From the IMG/VR virus record IMGVR_UViG_3300046005_000547, positions 170,736 to 234,735 of that record: a stretch of DNA of 64,000 bases; one strand, 5' to 3'. The translations under genes and the position numbers were made by a program. The notes under the pieces are model-generated. The model searched no databases and was not told where the DNA came from. It saw only the letters and a program-made list of their open reading frames with translations. This document shows positions 25,486 through 63,690 of this stretch, in pieces; within the stretch, counting starts at the first letter, position 1; the number at the start of each line of letters is the position of its first letter.

Positions 25486-25499
25486 TATTGTATTTGTTT

Positions 25500-26200
25500 A
25501 ATTGTTAGTATAATGTATTAGATATAATCGAAAAAGAGTCTTGAAGTAATATAGAAAATAATAAAAGAATATTAAAATGAAACAATAGAACTAACTCAAA
25601 CCGTCGACATAGTCTAGTATACTGGGTTTTTATCGATTTCGAAAGGAGTAATTAGACGTTGATTATTACACATTCGATAACCTTGGTCTCTTTCGATACG
25701 TGATTATAATTGTTTCGATGTTAATGTTTAATTTAACAGTCTATATTGTTGTTTTAAGATGTATTAAATGTATCCTGTAGAGTTGATTGACATAATAAGG
25801 AAAGATTCCATTAGAGCGGATTATTGGACAAATAATGGATGTTAATGATTCAACATAGAATTGATATATTGTAAATTTCAAACAATAAAAATCCCGACAG
25901 AATTGTTCATTCTTATCGGGATCTGAGACTCAGAGATTTTATGTTGAATTATTGTATAGAATATATTCGATAAAGACATTAATATACTCTATAAAGAATC
26001 TAATAGTAATATAAAAGAATATAGAAAAACAATAGATACACTAACTGAAACGTCGACATAGTCTAGTATACTGTATTTTTTATCATTTCGAAAGGAGTAA
26101 TTAGACTCTGTAATAATCATATTTATTCGATATCCAGTCAATCTTAAGACGTATTCGATGTTCCTTTCGATACATGATATAATCAGTTTCGATGAATAAC
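25500..26200. repeat. Tandem cassette array A: two GTCGACATAGTCTA-anchored units, period 449 bp
   Basis: Anchors at 25603 and 26052; minus-strand promoters TTTCGA-N17-TATACT at 25616-25644 and 26065-26093; hairpin element 25738-25841; terminator 25884-25923. Confidence 0.9.
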
Positions 26201-26488
26201 TTCGATAGATTCAATCTTAACATTATTTGATTTACGTCTATCCAACATATATTCATTGACATTTAATCTAACGAAATTCTCCGATCCTGATACAATCTTA
26301 AATTTACAGATAATATCATATCGACCATCAACCAAGTTTGAATTGTTAAAATTACCGTCAGTTACTCGTTTTAATATGAAGTCAATGTTTGGACTGAACC
26401 ATTTGAATCTCTTGGTAAAATCCAATCTATCTTTTGAATTTTCATATTCCTTCAAACACATCGCTCTGTACATTATCATATCCATCAT
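26183..26488 (-). CDS. Hypothetical protein sitting inside the repeat scaffold
   Basis: RBS+ATG supplied by left end of hairpin element H3; 3' end overlaps TTCGA boxes. Confidence 0.7.
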   Translation of the reverse strand: MMDMIMYRAMCLKEYENSKDRLDFTKRFKWFSPNIDFILKRVTDGNFNNSNLVDGRYDIICKFKIVSGSENFVRLNVNEYMLDRRKSNNVKIESIEVIHRN

Positions 26489-26491
26489 TTA

Positions 26492-26587
26492 ATCCATCTT
26501 ATTTGTCGTTTAAACAACGTTTCCATTATATCCTGTAGAGTTGATTGACAATATCAATAATCGTCAACTATGGACAAATAATGTCCA
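26492..26587. repeat. Inverted-repeat element copy H3
   Basis: Core TCCTGTAGAGTTGATTGACA at 26531-26550; arms TCCATCTTATTTGTC / GACAAATAATGTCCA. Confidence 0.85.
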
Positions 26588-26619
26588 TAATACAATAGGA
26601 ATAATAAACCTTTACGCAT

Positions 26620-26656
26620 AAAAAAATCCTAATCAACTTTTCAGCCGATTAGGATC
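26620..26656 (-). terminator. Intrinsic terminator
   Basis: ATCCTAATC/GATTAGGAT stem with A7 tract on + strand. Confidence 0.75.
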
Positions 26657-26666
26657 GTATTAACAA

Positions 26667-28637: not shown

Positions 28638-28767
28638 TATTTTTTTCCTTTATCTTATTTGGTTTAATCTTCATTTAGAAATCTATTTAATAATATATTT
28701 GCGTTCGCTGTTATATCTCCAGTAAAACGAAAAATGGAGAAACCCGTTAAGGTCTCTCCAATCTTAT

Positions 28768-30138
28768 TTAAAAGAATTCATCCAATGATGTAGATTCAAA
28801 TTCATCTTTAAGGTCTTGATGATATTCATCAATCCATTGTTGCCCTTTCTCATGTTCTAATAAGAAATCGTACCATTCTTTCGATGTCCACATTTTTTGG
28901 AAAACGCCGTTCCAAAGTGGGCGCCATAATGGATGCGTCTCATCTTTACGTCTGGTGTCAACAAACAAACGTCTATAATCTTCATATTCCTTTGAACCCA
29001 GACCCAACATGTCTTCTCTGAAATAAGCAATAACAGAAATACGTTCACCACCTTCTTCGGTTTGAATGAATTCAGTGTTTCCATGTAAAATTTCATGATT
29101 ATTGATTAAACATAAATCTCTTGGTCTAATGTTAACTGCAATTCTATATGCAGGAAACACTAGATAACAACCTTCATAATTCTCATTTTTAGATAACACC
29201 AATAGATTTGAGAACCCTGATGTCAAATCACCGGCATCAAAATGATAATGCGTACGAAACGATTTATTTACAGTCACTGTTGTAAATACGGTTTCGGGAA
29301 TCAAAAATGCTGGATCCATTTTGTCGGCAGCTGCTCTCTGGTTACCCCATCTCCAAGGTAATAATTCCTTGAATCCTCCATTCAAACGTTTGAAAAATGG
29401 AAATGATAATTTGAATTTATCAAAATGATGGTCGGTGTATCCGGTTGCTCTACCATAAGGGATTCGTGGGTATCTTGAATACCATCCAGCAATACCAGAA
29501 TATGCTGGAGCAGCATAAACTGTATTAGACACCCAATTTTTCATTACAAATAATGCTCGTTCTTTGGCATCTTCTTGGTCCATGGATTCTAATTCTGAAA
29601 CCAATTCATCAAATTTAAAATTGTCTGGAGTTTTATTAGTCAACCATACAGAAGTTCTTAAACCGTTGTTAGATGAATTATCTTGTTGTTTGAGTTGTTC
29701 TAATGGATCCGAACCGTCTAATGTACTTGTTCTATCAATAAAGTATTCTAAAATATCATGTTGACGTTTAGTGAATCGTTCGCGTCGTTCATTATCTGTT
29801 ATTTCTTCTAACATACCAGCAGCAAGTCCGCGATTGTTAGATAATACAGCAGCATCTCTTAATCCGCCGTACGCTCCATCGTGTTCTTCAATAGTGAAAA
29901 ATCCTTTACGATATTTAAATGCGATACGCCGTTCATCAGAACCTTTATCGCATGAATTACATTCAGATACACAAGTTGCTTTGGTTGATAAATCGCATAA
30001 TGGTTCCATGTATACATCAACGTCTTCGTCGATATCTCCCCCAGGTCCAATTAAAATATCATAATGAGATCTATCTGCACCATGACCCAATAGGTGGTCT
30101 ACGTTATGTTTTTCTTTTGCTACAATAATTCTTGCCAT
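28768..30138 (-). CDS. TET/JBP-family 2OG-Fe(II) dioxygenase, paralog A
   Basis: PETVFTTVTVNKSFRTHYHFDAGD (HxD); ILHGNT; ERISVIAYFRE; YPRIPYGRAT. Confidence 0.9.
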   Translation of the reverse strand: MARIIVAKEKHNVDHLLGHGADRSHYDILIGPGGDIDEDVDVYMEPLCDLSTKATCVSECNSCDKGSDERRIAFKYRKGFFTIEEHDGAYGGLRDAAVLSNNRGLAAGMLEEITDNERRERFTKRQHDILEYFIDRTSTLDGSDPLEQLKQQDNSSNNGLRTSVWLTNKTPDNFKFDELVSELESMDQEDAKERALFVMKNWVSNTVYAAPAYSGIAGWYSRYPRIPYGRATGYTDHHFDKFKLSFPFFKRLNGGFKELLPWRWGNQRAAADKMDPAFLIPETVFTTVTVNKSFRTHYHFDAGDLTSGFSNLLVLSKNENYEGCYLVFPAYRIAVNIRPRDLCLINNHEILHGNTEFIQTEEGGERISVIAYFREDMLGLGSKEYEDYRRLFVDTRRKDETHPLWRPLWNGVFQKMWTSKEWYDFLLEHEKGQQWIDEYHQDLKDEFESTSLDEFF

Positions 30139-30318
30139 ATGTTTGCCCTTTTGTTTAAAATTACATTATACTCTATAATGTTTAAAATAGAAATCTTCTT
30201 AATACATTACATATAATACACAAATCTAATGGAGTTCAGAATAATATCTGAACTCCATGTTTATCACCAACTAATTGTCCATGTATAATTTACAGTGGAA
30301 TGTCATTTTCGATATTCA

Positions 30319-31047
30319 TTATTGTTTCCGTTTAATCAAAGTTTGTTTCCAATCAATTTCACCAGACTGGATAGCGTCATACAATTTATCGTCTAAAGAT
30401 ATTGATTCGTATGAATTATCATTGATACCTTCACCCCACATTTCTGTTTCATCTCTGTCTTCCATAATAGGTTTAAATCTGTAGAACATTCCCTCTGGTA
30501 TTAAATTGATACCAACCAAATCAATAGAAAAATACTGCATATCTTCGGAACAATTCTTATTCCATACGTTACCAGTAATGAAATCATTGTATGTGATGAC
30601 ATCTTTATTTACATTAGTTCTGAAAATAATAGTTGAATAATTATATAATTCGTTCCCAATATCAAAGAATGTTTTAATATACTCGTATTGACCGTTTCTA
30701 CCATTATCCCAATATCTTTCTTTGCGCGTTGGTGCCGTTTCAAATTCAAACAATTCGCCGTCTTCATCCATGGCAGCACAAACTGCCCAATCGTTTTTGA
30801 ATTCATAATTTAACAATCCAGGATAAATTGGTTTATCGATTGTTCCGTTGTAATGATTTACAAAATCTCTAATATCAGTATCAGAATATCCATTATCATT
30901 CAAACAATTATGAATTTCTTCAAATAATTCAATACGTTCTAATTCTTCTTTAATCAAATTTACAGGAACATTAACTTGTTGATTGGTTGATGTATCTTTC
31001 ATGTTTAAAATGTAATCCGATTGTTTGGTTGTGTTAATAATAATCAT
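30319..31047 (-). CDS. Hypothetical protein
   Basis: Long ORF with AGGAG RBS. Confidence 0.7.
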   Translation of the reverse strand: MIIINTTKQSDYILNMKDTSTNQQVNVPVNLIKEELERIELFEEIHNCLNDNGYSDTDIRDFVNHYNGTIDKPIYPGLLNYEFKNDWAVCAAMDEDGELFEFETAPTRKERYWDNGRNGQYEYIKTFFDIGNELYNYSTIIFRTNVNKDVITYNDFITGNVWNKNCSEDMQYFSIDLVGINLIPEGMFYRFKPIMEDRDETEMWGEGINDNSYESISLDDKLYDAIQSGEIDWKQTLIKRKQ

Positions 31048-31059
31048 TTGGTTCTCCTG

Positions 31060-31596
31060 TTATTTTGTTGGGTCTAAATTCATTGATGCTTTACTTCTTT
31101 TGATGGCTTGTTCTCTGGTTGGATACGCTAATCCATTTTCAATATAAAACAATGATGAATGTTCATACTTCAACGTCGTATAAAAATTAGGATTCATGTT
31201 TGCTATATAGAAAATAGACCCTTCTCTAAATCCATCTCTTTGACCGTCTTCAACAAACCAACCATTTACGTTTATTTTTGGTAATTCTTTAATTCTTCTG
31301 TATTTTACTGTTCCTGATCGATGGTCATGAAAATCGGGGTGTTCTGTACAATTAACGTATCCAAATTGTGTTAATTTTTGCCATTTTTCATATGGTGTTG
31401 AATTATGTTTCCAATCTTCTGAATATGCATCAATCATAATGTTAATATCTCTACAATCGGAGAATTCCGTTACAATACAATTATCTCGATACATTCTATT
31501 ACATTTCCCGCATTTAAATTCATTTTGGTATCTAGAATCAACGCCCTTTTTAGATATAATACCATAACAATCTTCACAATGTAATTCATCTTGCAT
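31060..31596 (-). CDS. Hypothetical protein; N-terminal Cys pairs, C-terminal domain shared with 41065-41556
   Basis: CEDC..CGKC; INVNGWFVEDG...GLAYPTREQAIKRSKASMNLDP. Confidence 0.7.
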   Translation of the reverse strand: MQDELHCEDCYGIISKKGVDSRYQNEFKCGKCNRMYRDNCIVTEFSDCRDINIMIDAYSEDWKHNSTPYEKWQKLTQFGYVNCTEHPDFHDHRSGTVKYRRIKELPKINVNGWFVEDGQRDGFREGSIFYIANMNPNFYTTLKYEHSSLFYIENGLAYPTREQAIKRSKASMNLDPTK

Positions 31597-31626
31597 TTCT
31601 TATACTCTTAAAATTAACATATTTCT

Positions 31627-31654
31627 ATTATACTTTATAAAACGAAATAAGAAA
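31627..31654 (-). promoter_or_regulatory. Early-type promoter
   Basis: TTTCTT-N16-TATAAT. Confidence 0.55.
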
Positions 31655-31659
31655 GAATC

Positions 31660-32577
31660 TTATGTAATAAAAGTATGGTTTGTTGATTTAATATGTCTAG
31701 TTACATGGGATAGACTGTTTGTTTTAAATGAACAATCTTTACAATAATGCATTACATCAGGCGTTCTATTTGGATTTCTATCAGGATTTTGTTTACAATT
31801 ATCATTATGATATTTTGTTATAATCGTTTTATTTTCAGATTCAAATCCACAAACATTACAAAAATGTTTCTTTACGTTTCTATCTGGATTCTGTTTACAA
31901 TTATCTCCATGGTATCTAACATAATTACCTTTATTAGAATACACAAATTCTTCAGAACAATGAATACAAACAAATTTCGGTTCAATCGTGTCTAAGAATG
32001 ATTTGGTTTCCAACATTTTCTTGTTCATTCTATCTCGTTCTTCAGATGACATATTAACATGCCATTCTGTAACAAGTTCAGATCTTAAATCTTTTATGTA
32101 ACTTTGACTGATTCTAATTTTCTCACTAATTGCATTTTGTTCTTCTTGCGTTCGTTTGGAAATAGTGTCAGCAATTTGATTCTTAATCCTTAATTTTTCT
32201 TCTTCTGATTTGGATTTTAAATTTTTAGAATGTTCTATATTTTTGAAAATAGACAATTCAGAATATTGTCTACTTGTGATTCCTTTTTGGTATACTCTAC
32301 ACAATTTATGTAAAGTAGGAAACGATTTCTTTAATATCCAATGGGCAACATAATGTTGACGTTTTGTTAAAATTATTCTATTCCAAGGAAATAATGTAAA
32401 ACATTCAAATTCAGGAAACATATCACTACCTCTAGGTAAAATATGATGTTTGTCTGTATGTTTCATCTTAGGGTGATTCTTTCCTTGTAAAGATGTAATA
32501 AATTTTATGTATCTATTCAGATAATGTATATTGTGCGGTTTGGTGTGTAAATGTTCTATAAATGTATTGTTGTTCAT
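31660..32577 (-). CDS. HNH homing endonuclease with C-terminal zinc-finger repeats
   Basis: KHHILPRG...NRIILTKRQHYVAHWIL; two CxxC...YH.DNCKQNPDRN repeats. Confidence 0.85.
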   Translation of the reverse strand: MNNNTFIEHLHTKPHNIHYLNRYIKFITSLQGKNHPKMKHTDKHHILPRGSDMFPEFECFTLFPWNRIILTKRQHYVAHWILKKSFPTLHKLCRVYQKGITSRQYSELSIFKNIEHSKNLKSKSEEEKLRIKNQIADTISKRTQEEQNAISEKIRISQSYIKDLRSELVTEWHVNMSSEERDRMNKKMLETKSFLDTIEPKFVCIHCSEEFVYSNKGNYVRYHGDNCKQNPDRNVKKHFCNVCGFESENKTIITKYHNDNCKQNPDRNPNRTPDVMHYCKDCSFKTNSLSHVTRHIKSTNHTFIT

Positions 32578-32633
32578 GTTTAGTAATAATTGAAAAATGG
32601 AGATAGAATTGACCTATCTCCATGTGTATATTA

Positions 32634-33995
32634 TTATCCCATTAGATCTTCTAATGAAACTGATTCGAATTTGTCTTTTAAATCTTGATGATATTCATCT
32701 AACCATTGTTGTCCTTTATCGTGAATCAATAAGAAATCATACCATTCTTTTGAGTCAAACATATGAGGATAAACCCCATTAAAGAATTCATGCCATTTTG
32801 GATTTGTTTTATCATGTTTAGAATTTTCAACAAATTGTTTTCTATGGTCTTCATATTCTTTAGAACCACATTCTAACAATCCATGTCTAAAATATGAGAT
32901 GACGCTTACTCTATGTGCATCTGGTTCATTTTTGATAATTTTTGTATTACCATGCATGATTTTACTATTATCGACAATTAACAAATCTCCTGGTCTTACA
33001 TTAACAGCAATTCTATATTCAGGGAATACTAGATACCCACCAGAGTAATTATCATTGTTAGATAATACCAACAAATTAGAAATAGCATCCTGTAAATTGG
33101 CTGCATCGAAGTGGCAACCCGTAACCCACGTGTTATTTACAGTTAGAGTGGTGAACACTGTTTCGGGAATCAAAAATGCTGGATCGATTTTATCTGTGGC
33201 ATCTTTTTGTAATTGCCATCTTCTTGGCATTAAATCTCTGAATCCTCGATTTAATGACTGGATAAATGGGTAACATTTTTTAAATTTATCAAAATGATGG
33301 TCTGTATAAGCAGTAGCTCTACCATAAGGTTGACGAGGATATCTACTCCACCACCCACAAACTCCACTCATGGCAGGAACCGCCATTGACGTTCCAGATA
33401 CATGTTTCTTATGGATTCGGATAGCTTCTGCTTGAGCATCTTCTCTACTCATCTTTGATAATGAATCCACCCATGATTCAAAATCAAACATTTCCTCACC
33501 ATACAGAACCCAGACGACACCCTTTGTTACAGTGGTATCATCTTTACGTTTCCGTAATTCAGATAATGTATCGTCATCATATAATGAATCTAACGGATTC
33601 ATGAAGTAATCAAAGATTGAACGTTGGTAATCAGATACATAATTACGTTTGGCATCTTTGTTGTTCGATTTATCGCGTTCTGTATATTTACCAGCAGCAG
33701 TTCCTCTATTGTTTGAAATAGTGGCAGCATCTTTCAATCCTTCTAATGCCATGTCTTGTTCTTCTTTTGTGAAGAAGTTCTTACGAAACTTGAACGCAAC
33801 TCTGAATTCATCAATACCTTTATCGCATGAATGACATTCAGATACACAATCAAGTTTTGTTGATAGGTCACAGACTGGTGGAGTATAAACGTCCGCATCT
33901 GATTCAATTAAAACATCATAAAATGAATCATCAATGAATGTTCCCAGTAAATGTTCACAATCAAGTTTTTCTTTTGCTACAATAATTTGAACCAT
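32634..33995 (-). CDS. TET/JBP-family 2OG-Fe(II) dioxygenase, paralog B
   Basis: PETVFTTLTVNNTWVTGCHFDAAN; IMHGNT; HRVSVISYFRH. Confidence 0.9.
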   Translation of the reverse strand: MVQIIVAKEKLDCEHLLGTFIDDSFYDVLIESDADVYTPPVCDLSTKLDCVSECHSCDKGIDEFRVAFKFRKNFFTKEEQDMALEGLKDAATISNNRGTAAGKYTERDKSNNKDAKRNYVSDYQRSIFDYFMNPLDSLYDDDTLSELRKRKDDTTVTKGVVWVLYGEEMFDFESWVDSLSKMSREDAQAEAIRIHKKHVSGTSMAVPAMSGVCGWWSRYPRQPYGRATAYTDHHFDKFKKCYPFIQSLNRGFRDLMPRRWQLQKDATDKIDPAFLIPETVFTTLTVNNTWVTGCHFDAANLQDAISNLLVLSNNDNYSGGYLVFPEYRIAVNVRPGDLLIVDNSKIMHGNTKIIKNEPDAHRVSVISYFRHGLLECGSKEYEDHRKQFVENSKHDKTNPKWHEFFNGVYPHMFDSKEWYDFLLIHDKGQQWLDEYHQDLKDKFESVSLEDLMG

Positions 33996-51913: not shown

Positions 51914-53650
51914 TTAACAACTTTGCGAGCTTGGATTCCAACCTTGATTGTCAGACGAAATCCAATCGTCATCTGATGCAGCCCAGCTTGGTTTATACCC
52001 AGTGCCATAAAATGTCCCATTCATACCATATTCGAGATCCCAATCAAATTCTAAACCAAATTCATTGGCAATTGCTTCAGCTTTATTGATATTGGTATAA
52101 GCACCATCAAGTAATTCTGCGATCTGTTGGTTTGCTTCTTTGATTTGTTCTTCTGTAAATTTGCTCATGTTAAATTCCTAATTGAGATTCAATGATTACT
52201 TCTAATTCTGTTCTTGTCATCTTTGTGATTACATAATTTCTATCATGTAACCAATCAGCCAATGTCTTCAGTCTGTTCTTTTCCAATGTTCCTTTGTAGA
52301 ATATAGTTGATGAGATTCCTTGTTCATCAATAAGTTTTGTGGAACCGTAAGATAATTCTAATTTAAATTTTTTCATTGTACACCAAATACTGTTTGTAAT
52401 CGTTCAACAATTCCAACATCAATAATCATTGCCTGCGCAAATAATACAATCATTATAACCAAAGATTTGATTCCGTATGAGGTAACAATCATCAGATTCC
52501 TTCACTATATCGTCTTTAGATAGACCAGTATGTTTCATCAGATAACTTCTGAATCTAGCGAAGTTATCGCTGAATGGAATTACAGTTCTGTTATCAATTT
52601 TAATGTTCAGTTTCATTTGACTTCCTGATACATTATTGTAAATGTTGTAGAATTTAATCCATCATCTAAATGATGAGAGAATCCAATAACTTTGTATCCA
52701 TTTTCAATCATGTATTCCACTTGTCGTTCGCAAATTTCATAACTGGAATACGTTTCGATTTTAATGTTCATATCAATACCATTCTTTATCAAATTGTCTT
52801 AATTCGCCGAATTTACCACCTTCAATTAAATTGATACTTTGATAAAATAACCAAGTTCCACCAAATATCAACACCATTTTAAAGATACAATCTAATAATG
52901 GAAATCCCCCAATATACCCTAAGATGAACGATAATGCCACCAAGATAATCCATCCAACTGTTTTACTTTTCATTTGTTAATATTCCTTTCAATTCCGATA
53001 GATGTTTAACAATTCCATCAATAATTTCATTAATTGATTCCGAATTGTTCGTTAAAATTTCAACATTTTGTTTTGTTCTATCGAAGAATTGGGAATAATA
53101 ACGATTATGGTCTAAAATTCTTCTATCAAATTGTTGAATTTCGCAAATAAGATTTTCAATATCGCGTTGTATATTATTCATATTTGAATTGTCCTGTTCT
53201 CATAAAATGTTCAGTTAATTTTAAAGCTAATTGATGTTCTTTAGAAATCCTTTTAAATGAAGCTAAGATTCTCCAATACGGTCTTGACTTATCTTCGGTC
53301 TCAATCAGATTGATTTTGGCATATTCTGTTAACACGATTTTGTTCTTATCAGCAAATTCCAATATCTGTTCATGAGATGGTTTGAAATGTAATTTCATCA
53401 TTAAATGGGATTCGCTGATAACTACATTTTCATCTTTGATTTGTCTGTCGTCATTTATGTCGTCAATAGCAACTTGAATGTAATCAATACGTCGTTGTAT
53501 ATAGTCATCATCGATTTCTTGAGATTCATCTAACGAATTTTGTAGAATGTATTTGGTTGTACTCAATATACCCATTAACAATTCTTCATTGGTCATCTTA
53601 GTTGATTGTCTGATTGTCATTAGATACACTCCAGTAAGATATCCAAACAA
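51914..53650 (-). other. Block of small hypothetical phage ORFs (51914-52168, 52170-52376, 52419-52616, 52773-52973, 52963-53181, 53174-53650)
   Basis: Co-oriented packed ORFs; one is hydrophobic (52773-52973). Confidence 0.6.
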
Positions 53651-54117
53651 ATAGTTGATTGTGTCTTATTCATATTTCGATTCTGTCTTAGATATTGAAT
53701 AATCTGAATTGTTGATTTCTTATAATTATCAGATGGACAATCCATTACATTCGATAATCTATCAACTAATTTAATGGTAAGTCCGTAAGATGACATCGAA
53801 ACTAATTTCAACATCAGGTAATTAGTCTTACCAATAATTTTAATTTGTTCATCGTCGGAAGTCATCTCATCAACTAGGTTGGCAATCAGATCCCCAAATC
53901 TCGTTCTGATTTCATCGTTAGATACTTCACAGTCTTCTTGTACGTCATGTAATAGACAAACAGAAACCAATGATTCGATGTTCTTAGATGTTTTATATTT
54001 GCGTAACAATTCTGCTACATGAATAGGATGAGTGATATATTCTTTACCAGTCTTTCTTCTGAATTGACCTTGATGTTGTTCTGTGGCAAATTTTAACGCA
54101 TCGTCGATAATGTTCAT
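53620..54117 (-). CDS. HD-domain small alarmone hydrolase (SpoT/Mesh1-like)
   Basis: ALKFATEQHQGQFR...YITHPIHVA; LLHDVQED; IKLVDRLSN. Confidence 0.88.
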   Translation of the reverse strand: MNIIDDALKFATEQHQGQFRRKTGKEYITHPIHVAELLRKYKTSKNIESLVSVCLLHDVQEDCEVSNDEIRTRFGDLIANLVDEMTSDDEQIKIIGKTNYLMLKLVSMSSYGLTIKLVDRLSNVMDCPSDNYKKSTIQIIQYLRQNRNMNKTQSTICLDILLECI

Positions 54118-54123
54118 TTAACA

Positions 54124-54223
54124 CCATTATTTGTTGTTTTAAGATGGATTAGATTTATCATGTAGAGTTGATTGACATATTATGGAAACGTTCCACTAGA
54201 GTGGATTATTGGACAAATAATGG
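54124..54223. repeat. Inverted-repeat element copy H4
   Basis: Arms CCATTATTTGT (54124-54134) / ACAAATAATGG (54213-54223); core TCATGTAGAGTTGATTGACA. Confidence 0.9.
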
Positions 54224-54247
54224 AGGAATTATATGCCAATCAACGAA

Positions 54248-55396
54248 TCATTTTTGTACAAAAACGAATGTACAATTACCAGAATCAATCATACAAGTTT
54301 TTAATTTGTTTTTTAATTCTAATGGTGACATCTGGTCGATGTATTGGAACGTCATTTCAATGTCATGGGTTTGTTCAAGTTTATATTGAGAATGAACTTG
54401 AAATCCACTGATACAACTGACAATCAATAATCCACCAGCAATGTTAATGAACATTTTATCTTTGTCATGTTTTTGTAGATAATACAAACTATAACAAAGG
54501 ATAACGATAATTGCGTAATTTGCTTGTAATAGATACGACCACATTTCATCCACCTAAGATTAAACTTGATACATAGACTTGTTGTATCTTATTTGTAGAT
54601 AAGAAATGTACAAGTATATTAACGTGATGATTGTTACCCGTCAAGAACGGTTCGGATATGATTTTACATCTGGCTCTTTCTGGGTGAAATGTAGCAAGTT
54701 GTCCCAATAAAGAACTGTTAATTGAAACGTTCATTTAATACTCATCCTGATTAGACCAGTATTCATAAGACATTTCCAAAAGGACATCTTCAAGGTTAGA
54801 TAATGTTTCTGGTAAAAATTCATCCCAATGTATATTGGCAACAATTTCTCCATCATTACCATACCAATACATTCTTTCGATAAATTCTCCTGTTATAACA
54901 ACCGTTGTATTAACACCGTTGAACACCACTTCATATTTACCTTCTGGTAAAGGTGGAACATCATTGTCTGAATCATGTCCATTAAAGAACCAGTTATCGT
55001 AATCGCTTGACATTGTATTATCCTCTATTGAAATAAGTTGAAAGAAGTTTCTTTATCAACAAAGACTGAAAGATGTTTAACATTTTCATATAATGCCATC
55101 ATTTCTTCACCCTCCCCTTTGTAATTGCATAATTCACAAATCAATAATTCTGGATTGTATTCAACTCCGAATTCTTCTTTGAAACGGATTGTTGGTTCAA
55201 TGTAACAGAATTTACGTTCATTGTCAGACAAATCGTTCCATTCTTCCATCAACATTTCCATGTATTCAGACGCTTGGTAAGGTTTTGAACGGAACATGTT
55301 TCTGTACATTTTGTTTGCTTGTTCAAATGTTCTTGGATCTTTCAAACCAGCTTCAAGAGCTTCAGCTAATTCAGTTTTGAAATTTGGATTTGACAT
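54248..55396 (-). other. Small hypothetical ORFs (54248-54553, 54546-54734, 54735-55013, 55025-55396)
   Basis: Packed ORFs downstream of promoter 55462-55489. Confidence 0.6.
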
Positions 55397-55429
55397 AATA
55401 ACCACCTTATATAGAGTTCGTTTAATTTA

Positions 55430-55489
55430 AAAGTTCATTGGATTCTTCCAACTTGAACTCTATTATAATGATTTTTATTTACATCGAAA
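55430..55489 (-). promoter_or_regulatory. Early promoter plus stem-loop leader identical to 27365-27402
   Basis: TTTCGA-N16-TATAAT at 55462-55489; 38-bp identity. Confidence 0.8.
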
Positions 55490-56136
55490 GAACTTTCTAA
55501 AGATTTAATATAAAAATTAATGTCGTGTGAATTTTTAATAAATTTACCAGTCAATCTATCTTTGATTATGTCCATTATATTACAGTCTTGAACGATATTC
55601 CCTTTGGAATTTATATACATTAAAATCCCATGATGTCTATAAGGATAAATCGGAGTCATGGGAGCATAATCATACGCAGCAGCAAATCTATAATGTGTTG
55701 ATTTAACGTTATCCACAAATTCTTTATTACCAATTCTAGGGGATCCAAAAGAATATATGACACAATCATCTCTGTCGATTAAATGTGAAAAGATAACTGC
55801 GATTGCACCACCCAATGAATGTCCAGTCAAATATAATTTTTTATTTTTGTCTAATCTATCACCCAATGATTCCAATAACAATTCAGAATATCTCAAGAAT
55901 CCACTTTGAATCCCTTTTTTCAATGTAAATGATATATCAGCAATCCAATCTTCTGGTTCGTCAGTGCCTCTGAATACAATTATTTGTTCAGTTTCTGATT
56001 CCAATAAGAATGCTTGCGCAAAACAATTTGAAAATAATTCAACAGAATACCCTTGTACAGTTATTGAATCGTTGTATGATTGTTTAGATAGATTAGCGAA
56101 GAATAATGCTTCATATAGAATCATAAATCTGTCCAT
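55435..56136 (-). CDS. Class 3 lipase (alpha/beta hydrolase)
   Basis: IVFRGTD, LTGHSLGGAIA nucleophile elbow, SFGSPRIGN, HDI..Y. Confidence 0.9.
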   Translation of the reverse strand: MDRFMILYEALFFANLSKQSYNDSITVQGYSVELFSNCFAQAFLLESETEQIIVFRGTDEPEDWIADISFTLKKGIQSGFLRYSELLLESLGDRLDKNKKLYLTGHSLGGAIAVIFSHLIDRDDCVIYSFGSPRIGNKEFVDNVKSTHYRFAAAYDYAPMTPIYPYRHHGILMYINSKGNIVQDCNIMDIIKDRLTGKFIKNSHDINFYIKSLESSFDVNKNHYNRVQVGRIQ

Positions 56137-57787
56137 TCTCTATCAATAAAATAAGACCAAGCATACAACCAAAGTAAAATATACAATGGAAATGCATATT
56201 TGATGTTGAACCAGTCCAATTTTAAGTGTTCCAAATAAAAGAAAGGAAATACACCACATGTAATTGGACTGAATATAATAATGAGATACCATAAATTCTT
56301 TTTCATTTAATATCTCATGGAGTCATATAATGTATCTGTTGAATCTGAAATTGTATATACGGATCCTTGACCGTCGTATCTTCTGAAGAGCAACCCTCGA
56401 TATTCATAACAATATGACATGAACATAGAATCTTCATCCGTTGATTCTACTCCAAATTCGGCGGCGGTTTCAAATAATGCATTATTAAAGAATCTACATC
56501 TACCATTATTCGATTTGTCGATAATCTTATGTAAAACAATTTTAAAGTCTGCGTCAGATAATCCATTTAGATAAACGCCAAATTGTTCTTCGCGTTCTTC
56601 TTGTCGTCTCAACATTTTAAAATGTTTATCTAAAGATGCTTCTCCTTCAGGAGTGTTCATCCAATCTATCATTGATTGTATTGGGTGTTTATTATTCGAC
56701 ATGTAATACTCTCTTCAAAAACGATTCAAGGTGTTCAACCATTTCTTTATGGACATCCATTATGTTATCGATATATTCAGAATTTGTAAATGGTTCTAAT
56801 TTATCGATGTAATGACTGTACATTGAACTTACTAATGCAGAAATCGGTAACACAATTATTGATACCAATGCAATCATTAACGCAACAACTTGAATCGACC
56901 AATATATAAACGTTCTGTATAAGATTTGTCTCATTTATCCTCCAATTTATGGAAAATTTCAATATCAACTTCTGATTCCCAATCCAAGTATTCTTTTAAC
57001 ACAGATAATCCATTATCGTCGCATAAATCAATTTTGTTGAAACTCCAAGGTCCGTCATGTTCTTTTACATGTTGAATCCTGAACGATCTATAATTTTGTT
57101 TAAAGATAATACAGACATCAGAACGAACCGAGCTTAAAAAGATATTGTAATCTATTGTGTTTATTGAAGAATCCTTTCCTCGAAAATGTAAATACTTTTT
57201 GATTTCTTTCAATAACATATTATTCTCTATATTTGTTTGTGAACAAAGCATCATATAATAATTTTGTATATCCAATAACAGCGATACACCCGACAATCAT
57301 AAACAACGCATTCCAAATCATAACCACTCCTCAATAATGTTTAACAATTCGTCGATAGTCTCAAATTTACCATTATCTACATCGATTATAACATAATCTC
57401 CATCCCCTTTAAGACAACAAATCACTTCGCCTATTTGTTTACCGATATCTACAACCATTTTAATTGTGGTGTCTGTATTAGTTAATTCAAACACTCTACC
57501 AACCGTCGAAGGATAATTTCTAATCAGGAACTTTGTTCTCAATAATTCATTGAATTGGATCTGATTATGTAATGATTCTTTCTTCATGACGATCACCCTT
57601 CACATTTAACTGAATACCCAAGGATTGAATCTTGGTTCATTTGTTCCAACAATTTGACTTGTTCTTGTTTTCCTCTGATGCATTCAGAACGAGAAGGATA
57701 CCCAATTTTGTATTCATGATTCACCAATTCAGTTTGTCCACCAGTGATTATTGATGCAGAGAGAAAGGAAACGATTAAGATTGACAT
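56121..57787 (-). other. Small hypothetical ORFs (56121-56306, 56307-56702, 56692-56934, 56931-57296, 57318-57596, 57593-57787), several membrane-associated
   Basis: Packed ORFs downstream of promoter TTTCGA-N16-TATAAT at 57844-57871. Confidence 0.6.
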
Positions 57788-57899
57788 TGTTATTACCTCA
57801 TAAAATTGTAAATGAAATTCAGGATTAAACCAACTTGAAATCTATTATAATGATTTTAATATACATCGAAAGGAATTTTCCAGTTGAAATGTATATAAA

Positions 57900-59560
57900 A
57901 TAAAGTCGAGGAAGACACTAAAAGAAAACCTAAAAACAATAGATACACTAACTCAAACCGTCGACATAGTCTAGTATATCCGAGTTTTATCGATTTCGAA
58001 AGGAGTATTCTTATCATGTAATAATCATATTCGATGCTTACGGTTATCCTTCGATGTCCTTAATGCTCTTTCGATATGTTGAATTTACAGTTTCGATGTA
58101 ATCATTAAATCCTTTCCAATTATTTGTTGTTTAAGATGGATTCATTATATCCTGTAGAGTTGATTGACATTTAACATAAAGATTCCATTAGAGTGGATTA
58201 TTGGACAAACAATAGATACATTAGGGTTGTTTTGGAATGACAATTCTGTATATTGAATCCAATAAAAATCCCAACAGAATGTTTAGTTCATATTGGGATT
58301 CTGGATGACAGAGATTTTATGTTGAATAATTGATATAATAAAGTCTATAAAATGTCTTGTGATGATATAATAAAGTCTATAAAGAGTCTTGAAGTAATAT
58401 AAAAGAATACTAAAACGAGTAAAGAACATTAATAGAACTAACTCAAACCGTCGACATAGTCTAGTATACTGGGTTTTTTATTATTTCGAAAGGAGTATAA
58501 GACGATGATTATTACACATTCGATACATTATTTCATCTTAAGATTCCGTTTCGATGTTTAATATGTTCTTTCGATATGTTGAATTTACAACTTCGATGTT
58601 CTTGTTTATTATAGACATCCATATTGTTGTTTTATGATGGATTCAATATATCCTGTAGAGTTGATTGACATATAATGGAAACGATCCATTAGAGCCCATT
58701 AACGAGCAAATAATGGATATATTAAGAATGATTCGGAACAAACATATTGTAAATTTCAAACAATAAAAATCCCACTCAGAATAAATCTGGCGGGATCTGA
58801 ATGACGGAGATTTTATGTTGAATATAGATGATTATATTATGTCGTTGTAGTAATATAATAATGTCTATAAAGAATCTAATAGTAATATAGAAGAACACTT
58901 AATGAAAGTAAAGGCAATAACTGAAACGTCGACATAGTCTACTATAATTGAATTTCGTCGAAAAGTCAAGAGAAATCTTTAGCTTGTAATAATCATATTC
59001 GATGCCTTAGATTATCGAACAATACCTTTAATGCTCTTTCGATACATGGTATCTATTGTTTCGATGTTAACATAAAATCCTGTCCAGTTATTTGCTGATT
59101 TAAGATGGAGAGATTTTATGACATAGAGTTGATTGACATAATATACAAAGATTCCATTAAGATGGAATATTGGACAAATAATGGATGTTATATGATTGGA
59201 TTGAAATCATATTATGTAAATTTTAAACAATAAAAATCCCAACAGAATGATTAGTTCACGTTGGGATGAATTATAAAGTCGATAAAGAATCTTGAAGTAA
59301 TATAGAAAACAATAAAAGAATATAGAAATGTTATTAAAGGTAATAACTGAAACGTCGACATAGTCTACTATACCCGAGTTTCTGACATTTCGAAAGGAGT
59401 TTAAGACGTTGATTATATCAAGCTCGACGTTTCGTGTATTCTTAAGACTCTTTCGATACATTGAATTTACATCTTCGATGTTAACATTTAATCCTACATG
59501 GAAATTTGCTGATTTAAGGACGATTCATTATATCCTGTAGAGTTTCCTGTCATACATAAT
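57900..59560. repeat. Tandem cassette array B: four units, no credible genes
   Basis: GTCGACATAGTCTA anchors at 57960, 58450, 58928, 59354 (periods 490, 478, 426); hairpin cores at 58150, 58651, 59119, 59533; terminators at about 58261-58300, 58762-58797, 59229-59267. Confidence 0.95.
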
Positions 59561-59629
59561 AAAAACATGTTAAATTGTATTATTGAACAAACAAATAAAT
59601 AAATAAATAAAATAACAAAAGGATAATCC

Positions 59630-62431
59630 ATGAAAACCTTCACTGACATACGCAAACAAATCAACGAGAACAGTCTTTATACTTCTCAACAAGAGAAAGA
59701 CGACTTCCTGAAAGATAAAAAGAAAATTGTAACTGCATTCTTATACTCTTTCATCGGTAATCTATCTCTTTACAATAAAGACTCTGCCAAAGCAAAACAT
59801 TATTTCTTATCGGATAAGAAATTACAGATTGTCAACATCAATGACGATAACAATGATGCGTCTTTAATTCTGAAAATCATGCATGATGAACATGGATTCA
59901 AGAATACAAACACTGCCAATGAGATGACTAAATTATTGGCAAAATTGAAAGTCTCGGATGTATCATCATTCGATGATGCAATTATCAGAGCATGGTTGTC
60001 GGATCTATCTCCTGCGTTCCATTCCGCTATCCCAACGGATTTGAAAAAGACTGTCGATGATTACATGAATAGTGTCACCAGTTTCGATAGATTGAGTTAC
60101 AAATTGTATAAACATAAGACTGCTTATGGTGACGGAGAGTATCTTGATTTGGCAAAGAAAGTTGGTCGAATCGAAAGACATACACATAAACCGAAAGTCG
60201 TAGTGACTCCAACTGCATCTGCCGTTCCACCTACATTAGCAAATCCTCAGATATTTGTTCCTACCGTTAATACATCGACTGCTGTTGTTACAACTCCACC
60301 GGATGTTATAGATGAACCTATTCAAATTGTTGAGAAAGAACCAGAAGTTAAACAATTCAATCAAGAATTGTATGACAAATTTAAAGTTAAAAATTTATTG
60401 AGTGATGATGAATGGGATGAATTGATTGAGGATAAAGAAGTTTTCGTTAAAATAATGATTGAATCTCCGAAACGATTATATACAACCCAATACCATAAAA
60501 TTAGAAAAGTTATGTTCAAAGAATTATCGGAAGAACAACTCATGGAAATGAAGAAAGTCTCCTGGAATTTAGATGTATTTAAATATGATATCAAAGATTC
60601 AATCATGATTCTGAAAGATAGAAATATGGATTTCGTTAAGATTTTTGGACCTTTACGAGTTGCGCAATATATGTGCGACAAAGATATTTCCGCGGGTAAA
60701 GAAATCATTGATTTTTATACTGAACAAAAGATCTTAATTTCAACTGATAATGGTAATCGTATTGTAAAGGATTTTCCAGAAATCTTAGTGGATGCAGTTA
60801 AATTGACAATCAAAGACATGGGAGTCGATTATGGTAGCTCGATGGCTGTTCATTTAAATCAACAACAAATTGATGAAATTTATGATGTTAATGATAGATT
60901 ACTTGTATTACGAAATGTTGTATTGACTGGTAGATTGATAAAGGATCCAGTTGATTTATTGAAGAAATTCAATTACAATGAAGTTTTAATCAAAGCTGGT
61001 TTAGAAAATACAAGTGTGCCTCATTTCACGCCGTATCTAAATTCAATGAATAAATTGTTCATGGAAGATATGGATAAATGGTATCCATGGGAACGAAAAT
61101 ATAGTTACATTAAACAATTATTCACCAAACCAAATGTAATTGATTATTTCAATGATAAATTTAAAAGAGCATTTACGGATGATGGTGTATTTGAATACTT
61201 CGACGACAAAGAACGATTAGATGGTATTTCATCATCATTGTTTGATTTGTTAGTATCCAATTATAAAACCAAACCGGAACTTGTTGATTCTATCTTCAAT
61301 GATTTTGGTGATAAGATTAAAACAAGAGTCAAAAAGAATTTCAACTCGACATTCAGAGTGATGCATGATTTAAAAGATAGCGCATTACCAATCAAAGAAG
61401 AACTAGATGCCAAATCTATTCAAGCTATCTTGGAATTCAATGACATCGACCTTAGTGTAATTTCTGGCACCAAAATGAAATTCTCTAAGAACAAATCGTT
61501 AAGTCAAACAATCAATGATTTTGTTAAAGATGAATCTGTTACCACTATTGAACCATTGAAAATTGTTGATTTGAAAACATCTGATGCAGATAACAAGAAG
61601 TTATCTCAGAAGATTGTTGATGAAACGCATTCTGGTGGTAAACATGGGGACATCTATCCATTAGTCTTACGTCAATTTGAAGTTCATCTACCAGATGATA
61701 AATTCCAAGAGTTCAAAAAATTGATGATTCAGAATAATTCACATAAAGAGATTGTTCCTGCTTTCCATGGCACTGGTTCTATTGCAGCTAATATGATTCT
61801 TAGATATGGATTTAAAGTGTTACCAGAACAAAGTAATTCTGCTATTGGTATACAAGGTAGAATGTTAGGTGATGGTATTTACTTTGGTACCAATATCGAC
61901 AAAGTATTACAATATGTTGGTAATAAAGGAATGACCAGAAGACTTGGTACAACTGGATATGTATTTGAAATGGAGAACGAACTTGGGGTAAAAGGTAATG
62001 ATTACAAAGAAGCTGGGTTGGGTAATGATAAAATTGCTTCGCCAGAATGGGTTGTATTTGATGCCAACAGACAATTAAAAATTATTAAGGCGTATGAAGT
62101 GAAATTGGTAGATAAATCAGAATTAGATAAATCATTAAATGAATCAGTCAAACCAAGAATGATGTCATTCAAAGAATATGTTGATATCAAGAAGAACAAT
62201 TATACATCATACAATTTCTATGACAGAAATGTAATTACGCCTGATGGCAAAGTAATCAAATCGACTGATGTAACAGACACTACATTTAAGAAAGGTATTA
62301 GAGTTGAAATCAGAGGAAGAATTACATCAGTGATTATTCCAACGAAACAATTAGAATTCAATGATGTATTGAGTTGTTATGATTTACAGGATAAACAATT
62401 AGACAAGTATCTTCGTCTATTGAATAAATAA
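59630..62431 (+). CDS. Large PARP-like (H-Y-E) ADP-ribosyltransferase, probable injected head protein (functional analogue of T4 Alt)
   Basis: N-term MKTFTDIRKQINE; catalytic motifs AFHGT, GRMLGDGIYF, SPEWVVF; (TAAA)n late-promoter-like tract and AAGGA RBS upstream. Confidence 0.8.
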   Translation: MKTFTDIRKQINENSLYTSQQEKDDFLKDKKKIVTAFLYSFIGNLSLYNKDSAKAKHYFLSDKKLQIVNINDDNNDASLILKIMHDEHGFKNTNTANEMTKLLAKLKVSDVSSFDDAIIRAWLSDLSPAFHSAIPTDLKKTVDDYMNSVTSFDRLSYKLYKHKTAYGDGEYLDLAKKVGRIERHTHKPKVVVTPTASAVPPTLANPQIFVPTVNTSTAVVTTPPDVIDEPIQIVEKEPEVKQFNQELYDKFKVKNLLSDDEWDELIEDKEVFVKIMIESPKRLYTTQYHKIRKVMFKELSEEQLMEMKKVSWNLDVFKYDIKDSIMILKDRNMDFVKIFGPLRVAQYMCDKDISAGKEIIDFYTEQKILISTDNGNRIVKDFPEILVDAVKLTIKDMGVDYGSSMAVHLNQQQIDEIYDVNDRLLVLRNVVLTGRLIKDPVDLLKKFNYNEVLIKAGLENTSVPHFTPYLNSMNKLFMEDMDKWYPWERKYSYIKQLFTKPNVIDYFNDKFKRAFTDDGVFEYFDDKERLDGISSSLFDLLVSNYKTKPELVDSIFNDFGDKIKTRVKKNFNSTFRVMHDLKDSALPIKEELDAKSIQAILEFNDIDLSVISGTKMKFSKNKSLSQTINDFVKDESVTTIEPLKIVDLKTSDADNKKLSQKIVDETHSGGKHGDIYPLVLRQFEVHLPDDKFQEFKKLMIQNNSHKEIVPAFHGTGSIAANMILRYGFKVLPEQSNSAIGIQGRMLGDGIYFGTNIDKVLQYVGNKGMTRRLGTTGYVFEMENELGVKGNDYKEAGLGNDKIASPEWVVFDANRQLKIIKAYEVKLVDKSELDKSLNESVKPRMMSFKEYVDIKKNNYTSYNFYDRNVITPDGKVIKSTDVTDTTFKKGIRVEIRGRITSVIIPTKQLEFNDVLSCYDLQDKQLDKYLRLLNK

Positions 62432-62470
62432 TGAAAGAATCCCAGACATGTTAAAGTGTCTGGGATTTTT
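62432..62470. terminator. Intrinsic terminator
   Basis: AATCCCAGACA/TGTCTGGGATT followed by TTT. Confidence 0.85.
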
Positions 62471-62471
62471 A

Positions 62472-62645
62472 ATGGAAATTTGTTGTTTTAAGATGGAATA
62501 ATAACATCCTGTAGAGTTTATTGACATATAATGGAAACGAACAACTAGAGTCCATTAACGAACAAATAATGGATGTTTTAATATTGATTTGTGGTCAGAA
62601 TATTGTATCCAATAAAAATCCCAGTCAACTTCGGTCTTCTGGGAT
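62472..62645. repeat. Partial cassette: inverted-repeat element H9 plus the array-type terminator
   Basis: Core TCCTGTAGAGTTTATTGACA at 62507-62526; AATAAAAATCCCAG..CTTCGG..CTGGGAT at about 62611-62645. Confidence 0.85.
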
Positions 62646-62652
62646 AATATAT

Positions 62653-62955
62653 TTAGATAGATGCGATGGAACCTTTGATGATACCAATACCATGTTTTTC
62701 TAAAAATTCGGAAGGTAAATCTTGTACATGGACGATAATACCTTCTTCTCTATGGTTGAATGCACCTTTACCAGAATTTGGACTATCGACAATTTTAGCA
62801 TCAGTGATAAACAATTTAATGTAATCAGTGCCTTTGGCTGACATTTTGATTTTGAAATTTACAGGGCGACCGTCTGCGTCAACGTAAATTTGTTCACCGC
62901 TTGATGATTTAGCTTCTTCCATAACCATCGCTTGGAATTCTTTAAATGTACTCAT
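62653..62955 (-). CDS. Putative internal head protein (T4 IP-like)
   Basis: MSTFKEFQAMVME/E N-terminus; own early promoter TTTCGA-N16-TATAAT at 62987-63014. Confidence 0.55.
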   Translation of the reverse strand: MSTFKEFQAMVMEEAKSSSGEQIYVDADGRPVNFKIKMSAKGTDYIKLFITDAKIVDSPNSGKGAFNHREEGIIVHVQDLPSEFLEKHGIGIIKGSIASI

Positions 62956-63028
62956 GTTTGTTCCTTTTAATTTTAAATTAGAATCAATTATAATGATTTC
63001 GCATTATATCGAAAGACTTTAATTATAT

Positions 63029-63223
63029 TTAGTCTTTCCAATCAATCCTTAGATTGTTCTTTGTAAAGAACTTCACAACGGATGAACTAATTACATTTCT
63101 GAAACATTGATGTAATTTAAAATTAGGTATCTTAACGCCGATATTACGAGTTATCCATTCAGATACATCTTTCTCAACGTAATTAATCAATTCTCTAATC
63201 TCATGGTCTTTTAAACCATTCAT
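63029..63223 (-). CDS. Hypothetical protein
   Basis: ATGA overlap with upstream gene. Confidence 0.6.
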   Translation of the reverse strand: MNGLKDHEIRELINYVEKDVSEWITRNIGVKIPNFKLHQCFRNVISSSVVKFFTKNNLRIDWKD

Positions 63224-63690
63224 GATTCTTTAATCGGTTCAATACTGAATGAATCGAATGTCAATTTATTTCCTTGTAATTGTTTAGTTAATTCTTCGAT
63301 CTTCTGAATATCTTCATCACTTGGTTTATACTTAATCGATAAATGTGGGATGTATTCAGGATAAGAATGTTTGTATCCTAGATTACTCAATACATTATGT
63401 TGAGCAATCAAATCAGGAGATTCTAATGTCAATGTAACGGCACCCCATGTAGAACCTTTCTCACCAAGTAATTTACATCCAGCGATAATACCAACAAATT
63501 TATCATGTAATGATTCAACTTTGTATGCGGGATTAGATACATCATACATTAATGTTACATGTAAATCCTCGATGATGTCTTCAATTCCATTATCATTGAA
63601 GAAACCTCTGATACGTTTGGAATCCTCTTCCGATAATTTAACAGATACGTATCCACCATTATATTGTTTCCATTGTTCAAATGTTAACAT
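63220..63690 (-). CDS. 2H phosphoesterase, T4 gp57B/Acb1-like anti-CBASS nuclease
   Basis: GYVSVKLS; DLHVTLMY (HxT); YKHSYPEYIPHLSIKY (HxS). Confidence 0.8.
   Translation of the reverse strand: MLTFEQWKQYNGGYVSVKLSEEDSKRIRGFFNDNGIEDIIEDLHVTLMYDVSNPAYKVESLHDKFVGIIAGCKLLGEKGSTWGAVTLTLESPDLIAQHNVLSNLGYKHSYPEYIPHLSIKYKPSDEDIQKIEELTKQLQGNKLTFDSFSIEPIKES

Follow-up and report, generated by a model that had tools for sequence, protein, structure and literature searches.

Positions 57900-59560 of the stretch of DNA analysed here are occupied by a tandem array of gene-less repeat units, set between a gene cluster with a gene starting at 57787 and a plus-strand gene (59630..62431, 933 aa) with a weak match to PARP-type ADP-ribosyltransferases (ART). 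The stretch, hereafter the window, is 64,000 nucleotides long and forms the last 64 kb of the contig IMGVR_UViG_3300046005_000547 (234,735 bp). Its GC content is 31%, and nearly all of its genes lie on the minus strand. Gene products of the window include an amino-acid:DNA transferase, two TET/JBP dioxygenases, a DnaB-like helicase, ribonucleotide reductase and the recombinase UvsX, which shares 50-52% identity with the UvsX of Sinorhizobium phiM12-like and Aeromonas T4-like phages (Straboviridae), and the phage is therefore a distant T4-like.

The array consists of four head-to-tail repeat copies, whose invariant 20-mers follow one another at intervals of 490, 478 and 426 nt. This 20-mer, CGTCGACATAGTCTASTATA, has six exact copies in the window where none is expected, all on the plus strand (25602, 26051, 57959, 58449, 58927 and 59353), and the block ATATCCTGTAGAGTTGATTGACA also has six matches against an expectation of zero; a repeat search of the window returned families of 3-4 copies spaced 426-501 nt apart. 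Tandem Repeats Finder left the array undetected, because its copies are only about 60-75% alike. Repeat spacing and 20-mer statistics thus agree with the initial annotation of the window, a model's first reading, which had placed four units of 426-490 bp here and had suggested that units be aligned and their number surveyed in relatives. In our alignment of 18 units, invariant blocks alternate with diverged segments.

Units are numbered below along the window and described on the minus strand, their predicted sense. In that sense, the order of elements is a terminator, a dyad with 11-mer repeats, a putative second promoter (class II), a leader with a vestigial ATG, a slot that may hold a gene, three to four inverted -35 boxes, a promoter of class I or sigma-70 type, a conserved start, an AU-rich body and then the next terminator. 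U4 (59228..59560) comes first: it is truncated upstream, after a degenerate TAGAGTTGATTG block, its degenerate B3 block reads TAGAGTTTCCTG (59538-59549), and it has neither a B4 element nor an upstream terminator. U3 (58761..59227) is complete, with a sigma-70-consensus variant as its promoter, and so is U2 (58260..58760), which holds a terminator, B4, B3, boxes, promoter and AU-rich body. U1 (57900..58259) is the last and has no terminator of its own; it leads into an ordinary class I promoter that is no part of the unit (57844..57871, minus strand; TTTCGAT, 16 nt, TATAAT, AGATTTCAAGTTGG) and from there into the gene starting at 57787. The last unit of every array behaves likewise, lacking a terminator and adjoining the ordinary promoter of the next gene cluster. 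The invariant blocks first listed for this locus are real, except that the fourth unit (59273-59560) is truncated and that GAGATTTTATGTTGAAT, just upstream of the terminator in the transcription sense, is found in only two of the four units (58311..58327 and 58807-58823). A second array of the window, array A (25500..26660, minus strand), has two units, one empty and one in which the space from the B3 promoter block to the boxes is filled by a gene for a 101-aa protein (phrog_22386; 26183-26488 on the minus strand).

The claim that the array is free of genes is borne out. Every frame of every complete unit contains at least four stops, and the longest open reading frames (ORFs) inside the array belong to no Pfam or PHROG family; we rejected a coding or pseudogene reading on these grounds. 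The array region contains no tRNA and no Rfam match, whether at the gathering threshold or at E<=1. It had also been stated that these are neither CRISPR (clustered regularly interspaced short palindromic repeats) nor TIGR (tandem interspaced guide RNA) arrays, and we agree: the period is 426-490 nt and the conserved blocks are dissimilar, the tandem-repeat scan found no CRISPR-type array (25-40 nt repeats with unique spacers), and no cas match appeared among the approximately 25 window ORFs scanned (those in 24985-27335 and 53620-62955, or the window's largest).

The strand of the units was settled through the promoters of the phage itself. Inspection of the window's ordinary gaps between genes, in the minus-strand sense, brought out a recurrent promoter, (T/C)C-TTTCGA(T/A), 16 nt, TATAAT, AGA(T/G)TTCAAGTTGG, often followed by a 5' stem-loop; this class, which we call class I, can also be written TTTCGA-N16/17-TATAnT-AGA, and is matched on the minus strand by TTTCGAAAGGAGT together with the 20-mer of the units. 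Within the window, TTTCGA-N15-17-TAnA[AC]T is matched 13 times, always on the minus strand and never on the other: by eight sites outside the arrays that conform to the class, four copies of the array element and one offset match inside U3. The eight, all on the minus strand, start at 63014 (63014-62987), 57871, 55489 (55489-55462), 37084 (37084-37057), 27424 (27424-27397), 25533 (25533-25507), 23410 and 17015 (17015-16988); the 16-nt spacing and TATAAT are each found in seven of the eight, and AGA follows in six. They lie mostly in intergenic gaps upstream of genes, the one at 55489 being inside a crudely called ORF. Class I promoters have a covarying 5' stem-loop and are often placed just after a terminator. 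They may be of a middle-type, activator-dependent class, since their -35 box differs from TTGACA. A generic scan of this AT-rich DNA for sigma-70 promoters and terminators was uninformative (16 matches for 16 expected).

In U1, the class I-type promoter lies at 57959..58006 (minus strand), with a -35 box TTTCGA at 58001-57996, 17 nt, a -10 box TATACT at 57978-57973 and then the conserved start AGACTATGTCGACGG; U2 and U4 carry the same element at 58449-58496 and 59353-59400. The reverse complement of the 20-mer is thus TATACT followed by AGACTATGTCGACGG, and that of TTTCGAAAGGAGT is the -35 box TTTCGA, an identification that follows from the promoter, the terminator and the inserted genes all being on the minus strand. 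U3, like roughly one unit per large array, has another sequence in place of the TTTCGAAAGGAG block, which puts TTGACT on the minus strand exactly 17 nt from TATAGT or TATACT, a near-consensus sigma-70 promoter; in U3 (58927..58975, minus strand) these are TTGACT at 58969-58964 and TATAGT at 58946-58941, followed by AGACTATGTCGACG. The TTTCGA and TTGACT versions both exist in this genome and in that of a 249-kb relative described below, and the whole minus-strand promoter picture repeats across the two. Genes occasionally inserted in units are also read on the minus strand, like the promoter and the terminator. Of the gene clusters that flank each array examined, one or more lie on the other strand than that initially proposed; an array of the relative is flanked on both sides by genes on the proposed strand. 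The initial annotation was therefore right about the kind of element, promoter-terminator-hairpin cassettes, and wrong about its strand; on these signals, the minus strand, on which the neighbouring early/middle genes lie, is the predicted sense of the units.

Its plus-strand version, in which each unit would comprise a promoter, a ribosome-binding-like AAGGAG and a short peptide gene, draws on an AAGGAG found 7-9 nt before an NTG in most units, and on a weak CTGAAA-16-TATAAT match overlapping the 20-mer. That NTG is followed directly by TAA in 9 of 18 units and no frame stays open; the phage promoter pattern has no occurrence on this strand, the U-run of the terminator is on the other, and four units exchange AAGGAG for the minus-strand TTGACT placed exactly 17 nt from the -10 box. 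We regard the plus-strand peptide reading as already largely refuted and scarcely credible.

The terminator is the best-supported structure of the unit. In U2, the hairpin at 58267-58300 and the U-run TTTTTATTG make up a predicted intrinsic terminator (58260..58300, minus strand), with counterparts at 58761-58796 and 59228-59267; the hairpin stands beside AATAAAAATCCC and has its T-run on the minus strand only, so that hairpin and AATAAAAATCCC together are best described as an intrinsic terminator of the minus strand with AATAAAAATCCC as its U-run. Over 20 copies, 95.6% of the cells of the hairpin are paired and 13 are compensatory, a value reached by none of 500 shuffles. It is built like the terminators behind ordinary genes of this phage, and in each unit it precedes the B3 promoter block by about 110 nt.

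Behind the unit promoter come 23 conserved nt, a body of 80-130 nt, a short conserved block and the next terminator. One may thus think of a multigene family of small RNAs, each unit giving a 140-200 nt RNA with a TATA(C/G)T promoter, a 5' seed (AGACUAUGUCGACGUUUCAGUUA), an AU-rich body and a U-tail terminator, a layout typical of Hfq-type regulators or of an RNA titrating a host factor. Promoter, conserved 5' 23 nt, internal motifs and terminator are indeed in register in 20 copies, the terminator covaries, and internal units cannot feed any gene, which would leave the RNA, or the act of transcription, as their only product. RNAalifold, in contrast, found no structure except the terminator in the putative promoter-to-terminator RNA, and nothing but an invariant 6-bp dyad in the terminator-to-B3 segment; with no Rfam match even at E<=1, the terminator helix is the sole supported structure of the units. 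The conserved 5' 23-mer has fewer target matches in the rest of the window than shuffled seeds give, with no complementary run of 10 nt or more, and conservation after the -10 box can be a DNA-level promoter feature, as it is in ordinary class I promoters. We consider the small-RNA explanation unlikely.

Upstream of the slot lies the B3/B4 module, found in U1 at 58147..58233 (minus strand) and also at 58648-58735 and 59116-59200. It is promoter-like in U1, with CAATCAACTCTA, CAGGA and TATAAT, preceded by a TCCATTA...TAATGGA dyad; CAATCAACTCTA is the reverse complement of the previously listed block ATATCCTGTAGAGTTGATTG, and is followed 5 nt later by a TAnnAT element and then by the conserved leader. 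Two more degenerate copies of the 11-mer TAGAGTnGATT are found inside the dyad element, at a spacing of 33-34 bp. The dyad element B4 (e.g., 58180-58215 and 58681-58716) has two forms, with ...TGGATTATTGGAC... or ...CCATTAACGAGC... at the centre; both are present in both phage genomes, and the dimorphism is therefore old. The module also occurs before real genes: directly upstream of the HD-domain phosphohydrolase gene at 53620-54117, as an isolated B4, B3 and leader (54118..54247, minus strand), and in array A before the 101-aa gene (start at 26488), which follows just after a terminator and has no other promoter. We propose CAATCAACTCTA-N5-TAnnAT as a second promoter class (class II), an assignment that is inferred, since no -35 hexamer can be recognised in B3. 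The relative has an isolated CAATCAACTCTA block about 355 nt upstream of a gene for a gp55-like late sigma factor (L002:8632-9057, minus strand). In U1, the ATG of the leader opens a six-codon ORF whose two ends line up, to the base, with those of the 101-aa ORF that takes this place in array A; empty units thus retain the start and the end of the ORF of the occupied unit.

Between the slot and the class I promoter stand TTTCGAT boxes, which with AATCAACTCTA repeats are among the elements of the units. Those of U1 (58030..58097) start at 58030, 58050, 58070 and 58092, and equivalent boxes are found at 58519-58597, 58998-59065 and 59452-59479. These TTCGAT motifs correspond to the -35 box of class I (CTTTCGAT) turned the other way, and none has a plus-strand -10 element at the right distance. 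Across 41 units of the two genomes, the TCGA cores lie at about -26, -61, -81, -101 (or -96) and -122 from the promoter anchor; boxes are 20-22 bp apart, roughly two helical turns, and the distance from B3 to the promoter falls in classes near 161, 172, 182-184, 193 and 204 nt, in steps of about one helical turn. Distances this constant, and in phase with the helix, suggest that DNA-protein contacts constrain them. An RNA stem formed by the inverted repeat between the B2 block and the main box was considered and rejected: the box is unchanged where B2 is replaced, and its lack of covariation with the TTTCGAAAGGAG block argues against a stem between them. In the whole window, TCGA is over-represented (234 copies for 180 expected, 43 of them within the two arrays), and the palindromic tetranucleotides GATC, AGCT, GTAC, CTAG, TGCA and CCGG reach about 40-55% of their mononucleotide expectation.

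As each genome has some 50 promoter-like sites and some 100 TTTCGA boxes without genes to drive, the arrays might be a sponge titrating host RNA polymerase or its sigma factor, a phage activator, or a host defence protein recognising the boxes. This would leave the terminators, the second promoter module, the fixed internal order and the even spacing of the arrays unexplained, and no candidate binding protein was identified, a MotA/AsiA-like factor not having been searched for. We judge the sponge quite improbable.

The repeat family is dispersed over the genome. Traced through the core TCGACATAGTCTA, the units of the 234.7-kb genome number at least 24 and are grouped, 2-5 at a time, in seven array regions at about 42.8, 73.2, 105.0, 141.0, 162.6, 196.8 and 229.5 kb, the last two being the arrays of the window; the repeat takes up about 4% of the genome in this lineage. 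Most of the stretches shared with a sister strain, 3300046004_000591, show no difference. In a more distant relative, 3300046008_000242 (the 249-kb relative; contig of 249.4 kb), one finds flanking DNA 66-82% identical and an ART protein 71% identical; the survey of relatives gave there a similar set of array regions, at about 10.8, 40-44, 77.0, 96.7, 137.8, 176.4 and 210.3 kb, including a syntenic four-unit array directly upstream of the ART orthologue. No DNA similarity to 50,697 phage records, near and distant, was found, and among cultured phages none has this DNA. A scan of metagenome contigs with an 18-mer core gave single chance matches only, none of the stretches examined having more than one core copy or a unit-like set of blocks, and a scan of viral contigs with a gapped B3...B4 pattern revealed no lineage outside the four source metagenomes (IMG 3300046004, -05, -08 and -11). 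In these scans, the family is seen only in this small clade.

Arrays are separated by gaps of 20-36 kb, plus one of 48-50 kb. This spacing is more even than random placement would give (p 0.0001-0.01, depending on the statistic and on circular or linear topology; 0.0001-0.004 for this genome, with a similar pattern in the relative), in a count based on arrays located through exact cores, of which some may have been missed so that the statistic could change, and in two related, syntenic genomes that are no independent tests. Such a distribution brings to mind homologous regions (hrs) acting at the DNA level, that is, clustered factor-binding sites serving as enhancers and/or transcription-activated origins, like baculovirus hrs or T4 origins. 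Seven evenly spaced regions per genome, boxes at a fixed distance of 20-22 bp with length classes about one helical turn different, a body of 23% GC against 31% for the window and blocks kept in every copy though no gene follows all speak for this reading; baculovirus hrs are likewise dispersed arrays of 3-8 units, with enhancer and origin activity (PMC4535591). A phage counterpart would have a factor bound at the TTTCGA boxes and short transcripts running through the AT-rich stretch, and would provide origins or enhancers, domains of about 30 kb and junctions for module exchange, an analogy we put forward tentatively as a minority view. Set against it are the limits of the array count given above and a terminator in each unit, which has no obvious role in an origin; T4 origins, moreover, are single elements, not arrays. 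On balance, an enhancer or origin function is possible but rather unlikely.

Units are old and diverged. Their mean pairwise identity is 0.60-0.68 within a genome and 0.53-0.55 between genomes, while 12-20 nt cores are the same in all of the more than 40 copies of the two genomes, which indicates selection on the blocks in each copy; the initial proposal that specific motifs are under selection, and that this is no recent duplication, is in this respect supported. Each of the 18 complete units, in each of its three segments, has its closest match within its own genome, most often in another array and not the same one from segment to segment; units are thus mosaics, which indicates exchange among arrays rather than local duplication. 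Neutral decay, that is, the remains of a duplicated gene with its control region, a tandem duplication or junk, might be invoked given that both ends of the 101-aa ORF are still present in empty units and that units within an array are only 60-63% identical. It is hardly reconciled with cores kept invariant amid flanks of near-random identity, with fixed internal distances, or with the synteny of arrays in a relative that shares only 71% identity in the ART protein; we hold this already disfavoured explanation to be very improbable.

The arrays also coincide with points of genome rearrangement. Array A is a synteny breakpoint: the genome is collinear with the 249-kb relative to its left and has unrelated genes beyond, on the upstream side (25500-26700 vs. 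L015), and the regions of array A and of the array at 57900-59560 (array B) have opposite relative orientations in the two contigs. A partial unit without a gene (terminator, B4, B3 and leader; 62432..62652, minus strand) faces the 3' end of the ART gene, and exactly at its terminator is the junction of a 576-nt segment (62651-63226) that the sister strain lacks; the segment carries a class I promoter and two small genes, both on the minus strand (62653-62955 and 63029-63223). HNH homing-endonuclease genes (HNH_3, phrog_99) are found inside repeat arrays of both phage genomes (L006:617-1258, plus strand, with copies in L012 and L014; L154:8085-8756, minus strand). One HNH gene inside an array has its own class I promoter and terminator.

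As to the neighbouring ART gene, a conserved late-promoter-like motif, AAATAAATA, lies 25-35 nt upstream of its start codon in all three genomes (59589-59620 in the window, about 4950-4985 in L142) and resembles the T4 late promoter TATAAATA; having such a motif of its own, the gene is probably independent of unit 4. In Aeromonas phage PX29, the nearest cultured relative, the ART locus is densely coding and contains no array. The link between array and ART gene suggested at first thus holds to the extent that the ART-adjacent array is conserved in the 249-kb relative, but six other arrays lie elsewhere. Sister strains, 100% identical elsewhere over tens of kb, are 94.5% identical in the ART gene region (59500-62700 vs. 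L007), with mismatches clustered at 60300-60600; the ART-like gene is thus a local hot spot of divergence or recombination between them. Elsewhere in the window, a DNA hypermodification cluster (27432-33995) contains the amino-acid:DNA transferase (27432-28637) and the two paralogous TET/JBP dioxygenases (28768-30138 and 32634-33995).

The closest described elements are the promoter-early and promoter-middle stem-loops (PeSLs and PmSLs), composite terminator-promoter cassettes of T4-like phages that flank ORFans in hyperplastic regions and recombine with one another; PeSLs are about 100 nt long, flank genes and end in a Shine-Dalgarno sequence and a start codon (Arbiol et al. 2010, PMC2839356; Comeau et al. 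2014, PMC4122927). The elements studied here share with them a T4-like carrier, a stem-loop terminator followed by a phage promoter in many genome copies, so that each unit has a stem-loop upstream of its own promoter, and an association with small ORFs, rearrangements and indels between close relatives (here, the 576-nt indel and the end of synteny at array A). An early-type (sigma-70-like) and a middle-type version may both be present here, to judge from TTGACT-17-TATAGT in U3 and one unit per large array and TTTCGA-17-TATACT in the others, B3 having no -35 hexamer. The ordinary intergenic regions of this phage also contain simple composites of a terminator and a class I promoter.

We favour, at about an even chance of being right, the view that the units are PeSL-like cassettes for transcription that have become larger, lack genes and stand in tandem, and that they are maintained as regulatory DNA with a function and act as junctions of genome plasticity. 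Each unit would be, on the minus strand, a self-contained gene-less transcription unit, presumably transcribed into a short non-coding RNA; proteins would bind the TTTCGAT boxes, and the arrays could act as portable homologous regulatory modules where genes are inserted or lost and segments rearranged. What a unit does in its host genome may be to serve as a recombination platform, as an enhancer or origin, or as a source of small RNA. The early suggestion of vacant gene-capture slots comes near this PeSL-like reading, with one unit occupied and nearly all empty.

Several observations weigh against the PeSL-like view. At 426-501 nt, units are 4-5 times longer than the roughly 100 nt of a PeSL, and nearly all are empty, without the Shine-Dalgarno sequence, start codon and gene that end a PeSL; among about 45 units examined, a single one has a gene in its slot (26183-26488), and the HNH genes in the arrays may have been inserted independently. 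Blocks are invariant in gene-less copies whose segments are about 55-65% identical, which suggests selection on each copy for something beyond the driving of a gene, and the even spacing of the arrays is not predicted by a pure gene-shuffling role. Between sister strains, which differ in the ART gene, the array differs by one base, and its turnover is therefore not rapid. Finally, all promoters and terminators are predictions from sequence, B3 even lacking the hexamer expected of a -35 box.

One has to keep in mind that T4-like phages are the best-studied large phages, and that the ways in which genes come and go in their hyperplastic regions, like the sites where replication starts in their larger members, are poorly known. 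If these are empty expression cassettes, they would be a ready-made landing pad for new genes, going far beyond the PeSL idea; should they work on the level of the DNA, a phage would for the first time be seen to have an hr-like enhancer/origin system. In either case, a strictly organised gene-less repeat is found at regular intervals and at rearrangement points, joining phage promoter types, phased boxes and terminators, and the promoter classes of an uncultured phage were derived from its nucleotide sequence alone.

Other known systems resemble the arrays in part. The T4 origins oriF/oriG and oriE consist of a middle-type promoter followed by an AT-rich stretch, oriE being said to have iterons; they are single promoter-plus-DNA-unwinding-element origins without a terminator, forming no repeated family or arrays. 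The units, for their part, show the phased boxes beside an AT-rich stretch and the seven dispersed arrays that one would look for in an iteron-origin or hr-like system. Cyanophage S-CREM1, described as having many non-coding RNA genes, was considered and set aside: these were predicted by an Rfam search, and the accessible part of its description mentions no repeat arrays.

Baculovirus hrs form several dispersed arrays in a large dsDNA virus, e.g., seven hrs of 3-8 units that each contain an imperfect palindrome, and work as enhancers and replication origins (PMC4535591). Unlike the arrays described here, they belong to eukaryotic viruses, and their units are 64-72 bp long without a promoter or terminator inside. 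Campylobacter group II T4-related phages (CP21, CP220 and CPt10) have repeat regions RR1-RR4 with units of 72-86 bp, a 13-nt core and up to 18 units per arm, often in inverted arms (PMC4546147, in the portion available); as in our phage, long non-coding repeat regions split a T4-related genome into modules, some enclosing genes, unit number varies, modules are rearranged between relatives and homing endonucleases are common. Unit size differs, the repeats described here have no DNA similarity to phage records (the 13-nt core itself not having been compared), and that portion of the report does not describe a promoter/terminator anatomy. Baculovirus hrs and Campylobacter repeat regions are thus best taken as analogues in layout only. 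Compared with PeSLs and PmSLs, the units add a second putative promoter module, phased inverted -35 boxes and a dyad element, and they stand head to tail in evenly spaced arrays of 2-5 with no genes between them.

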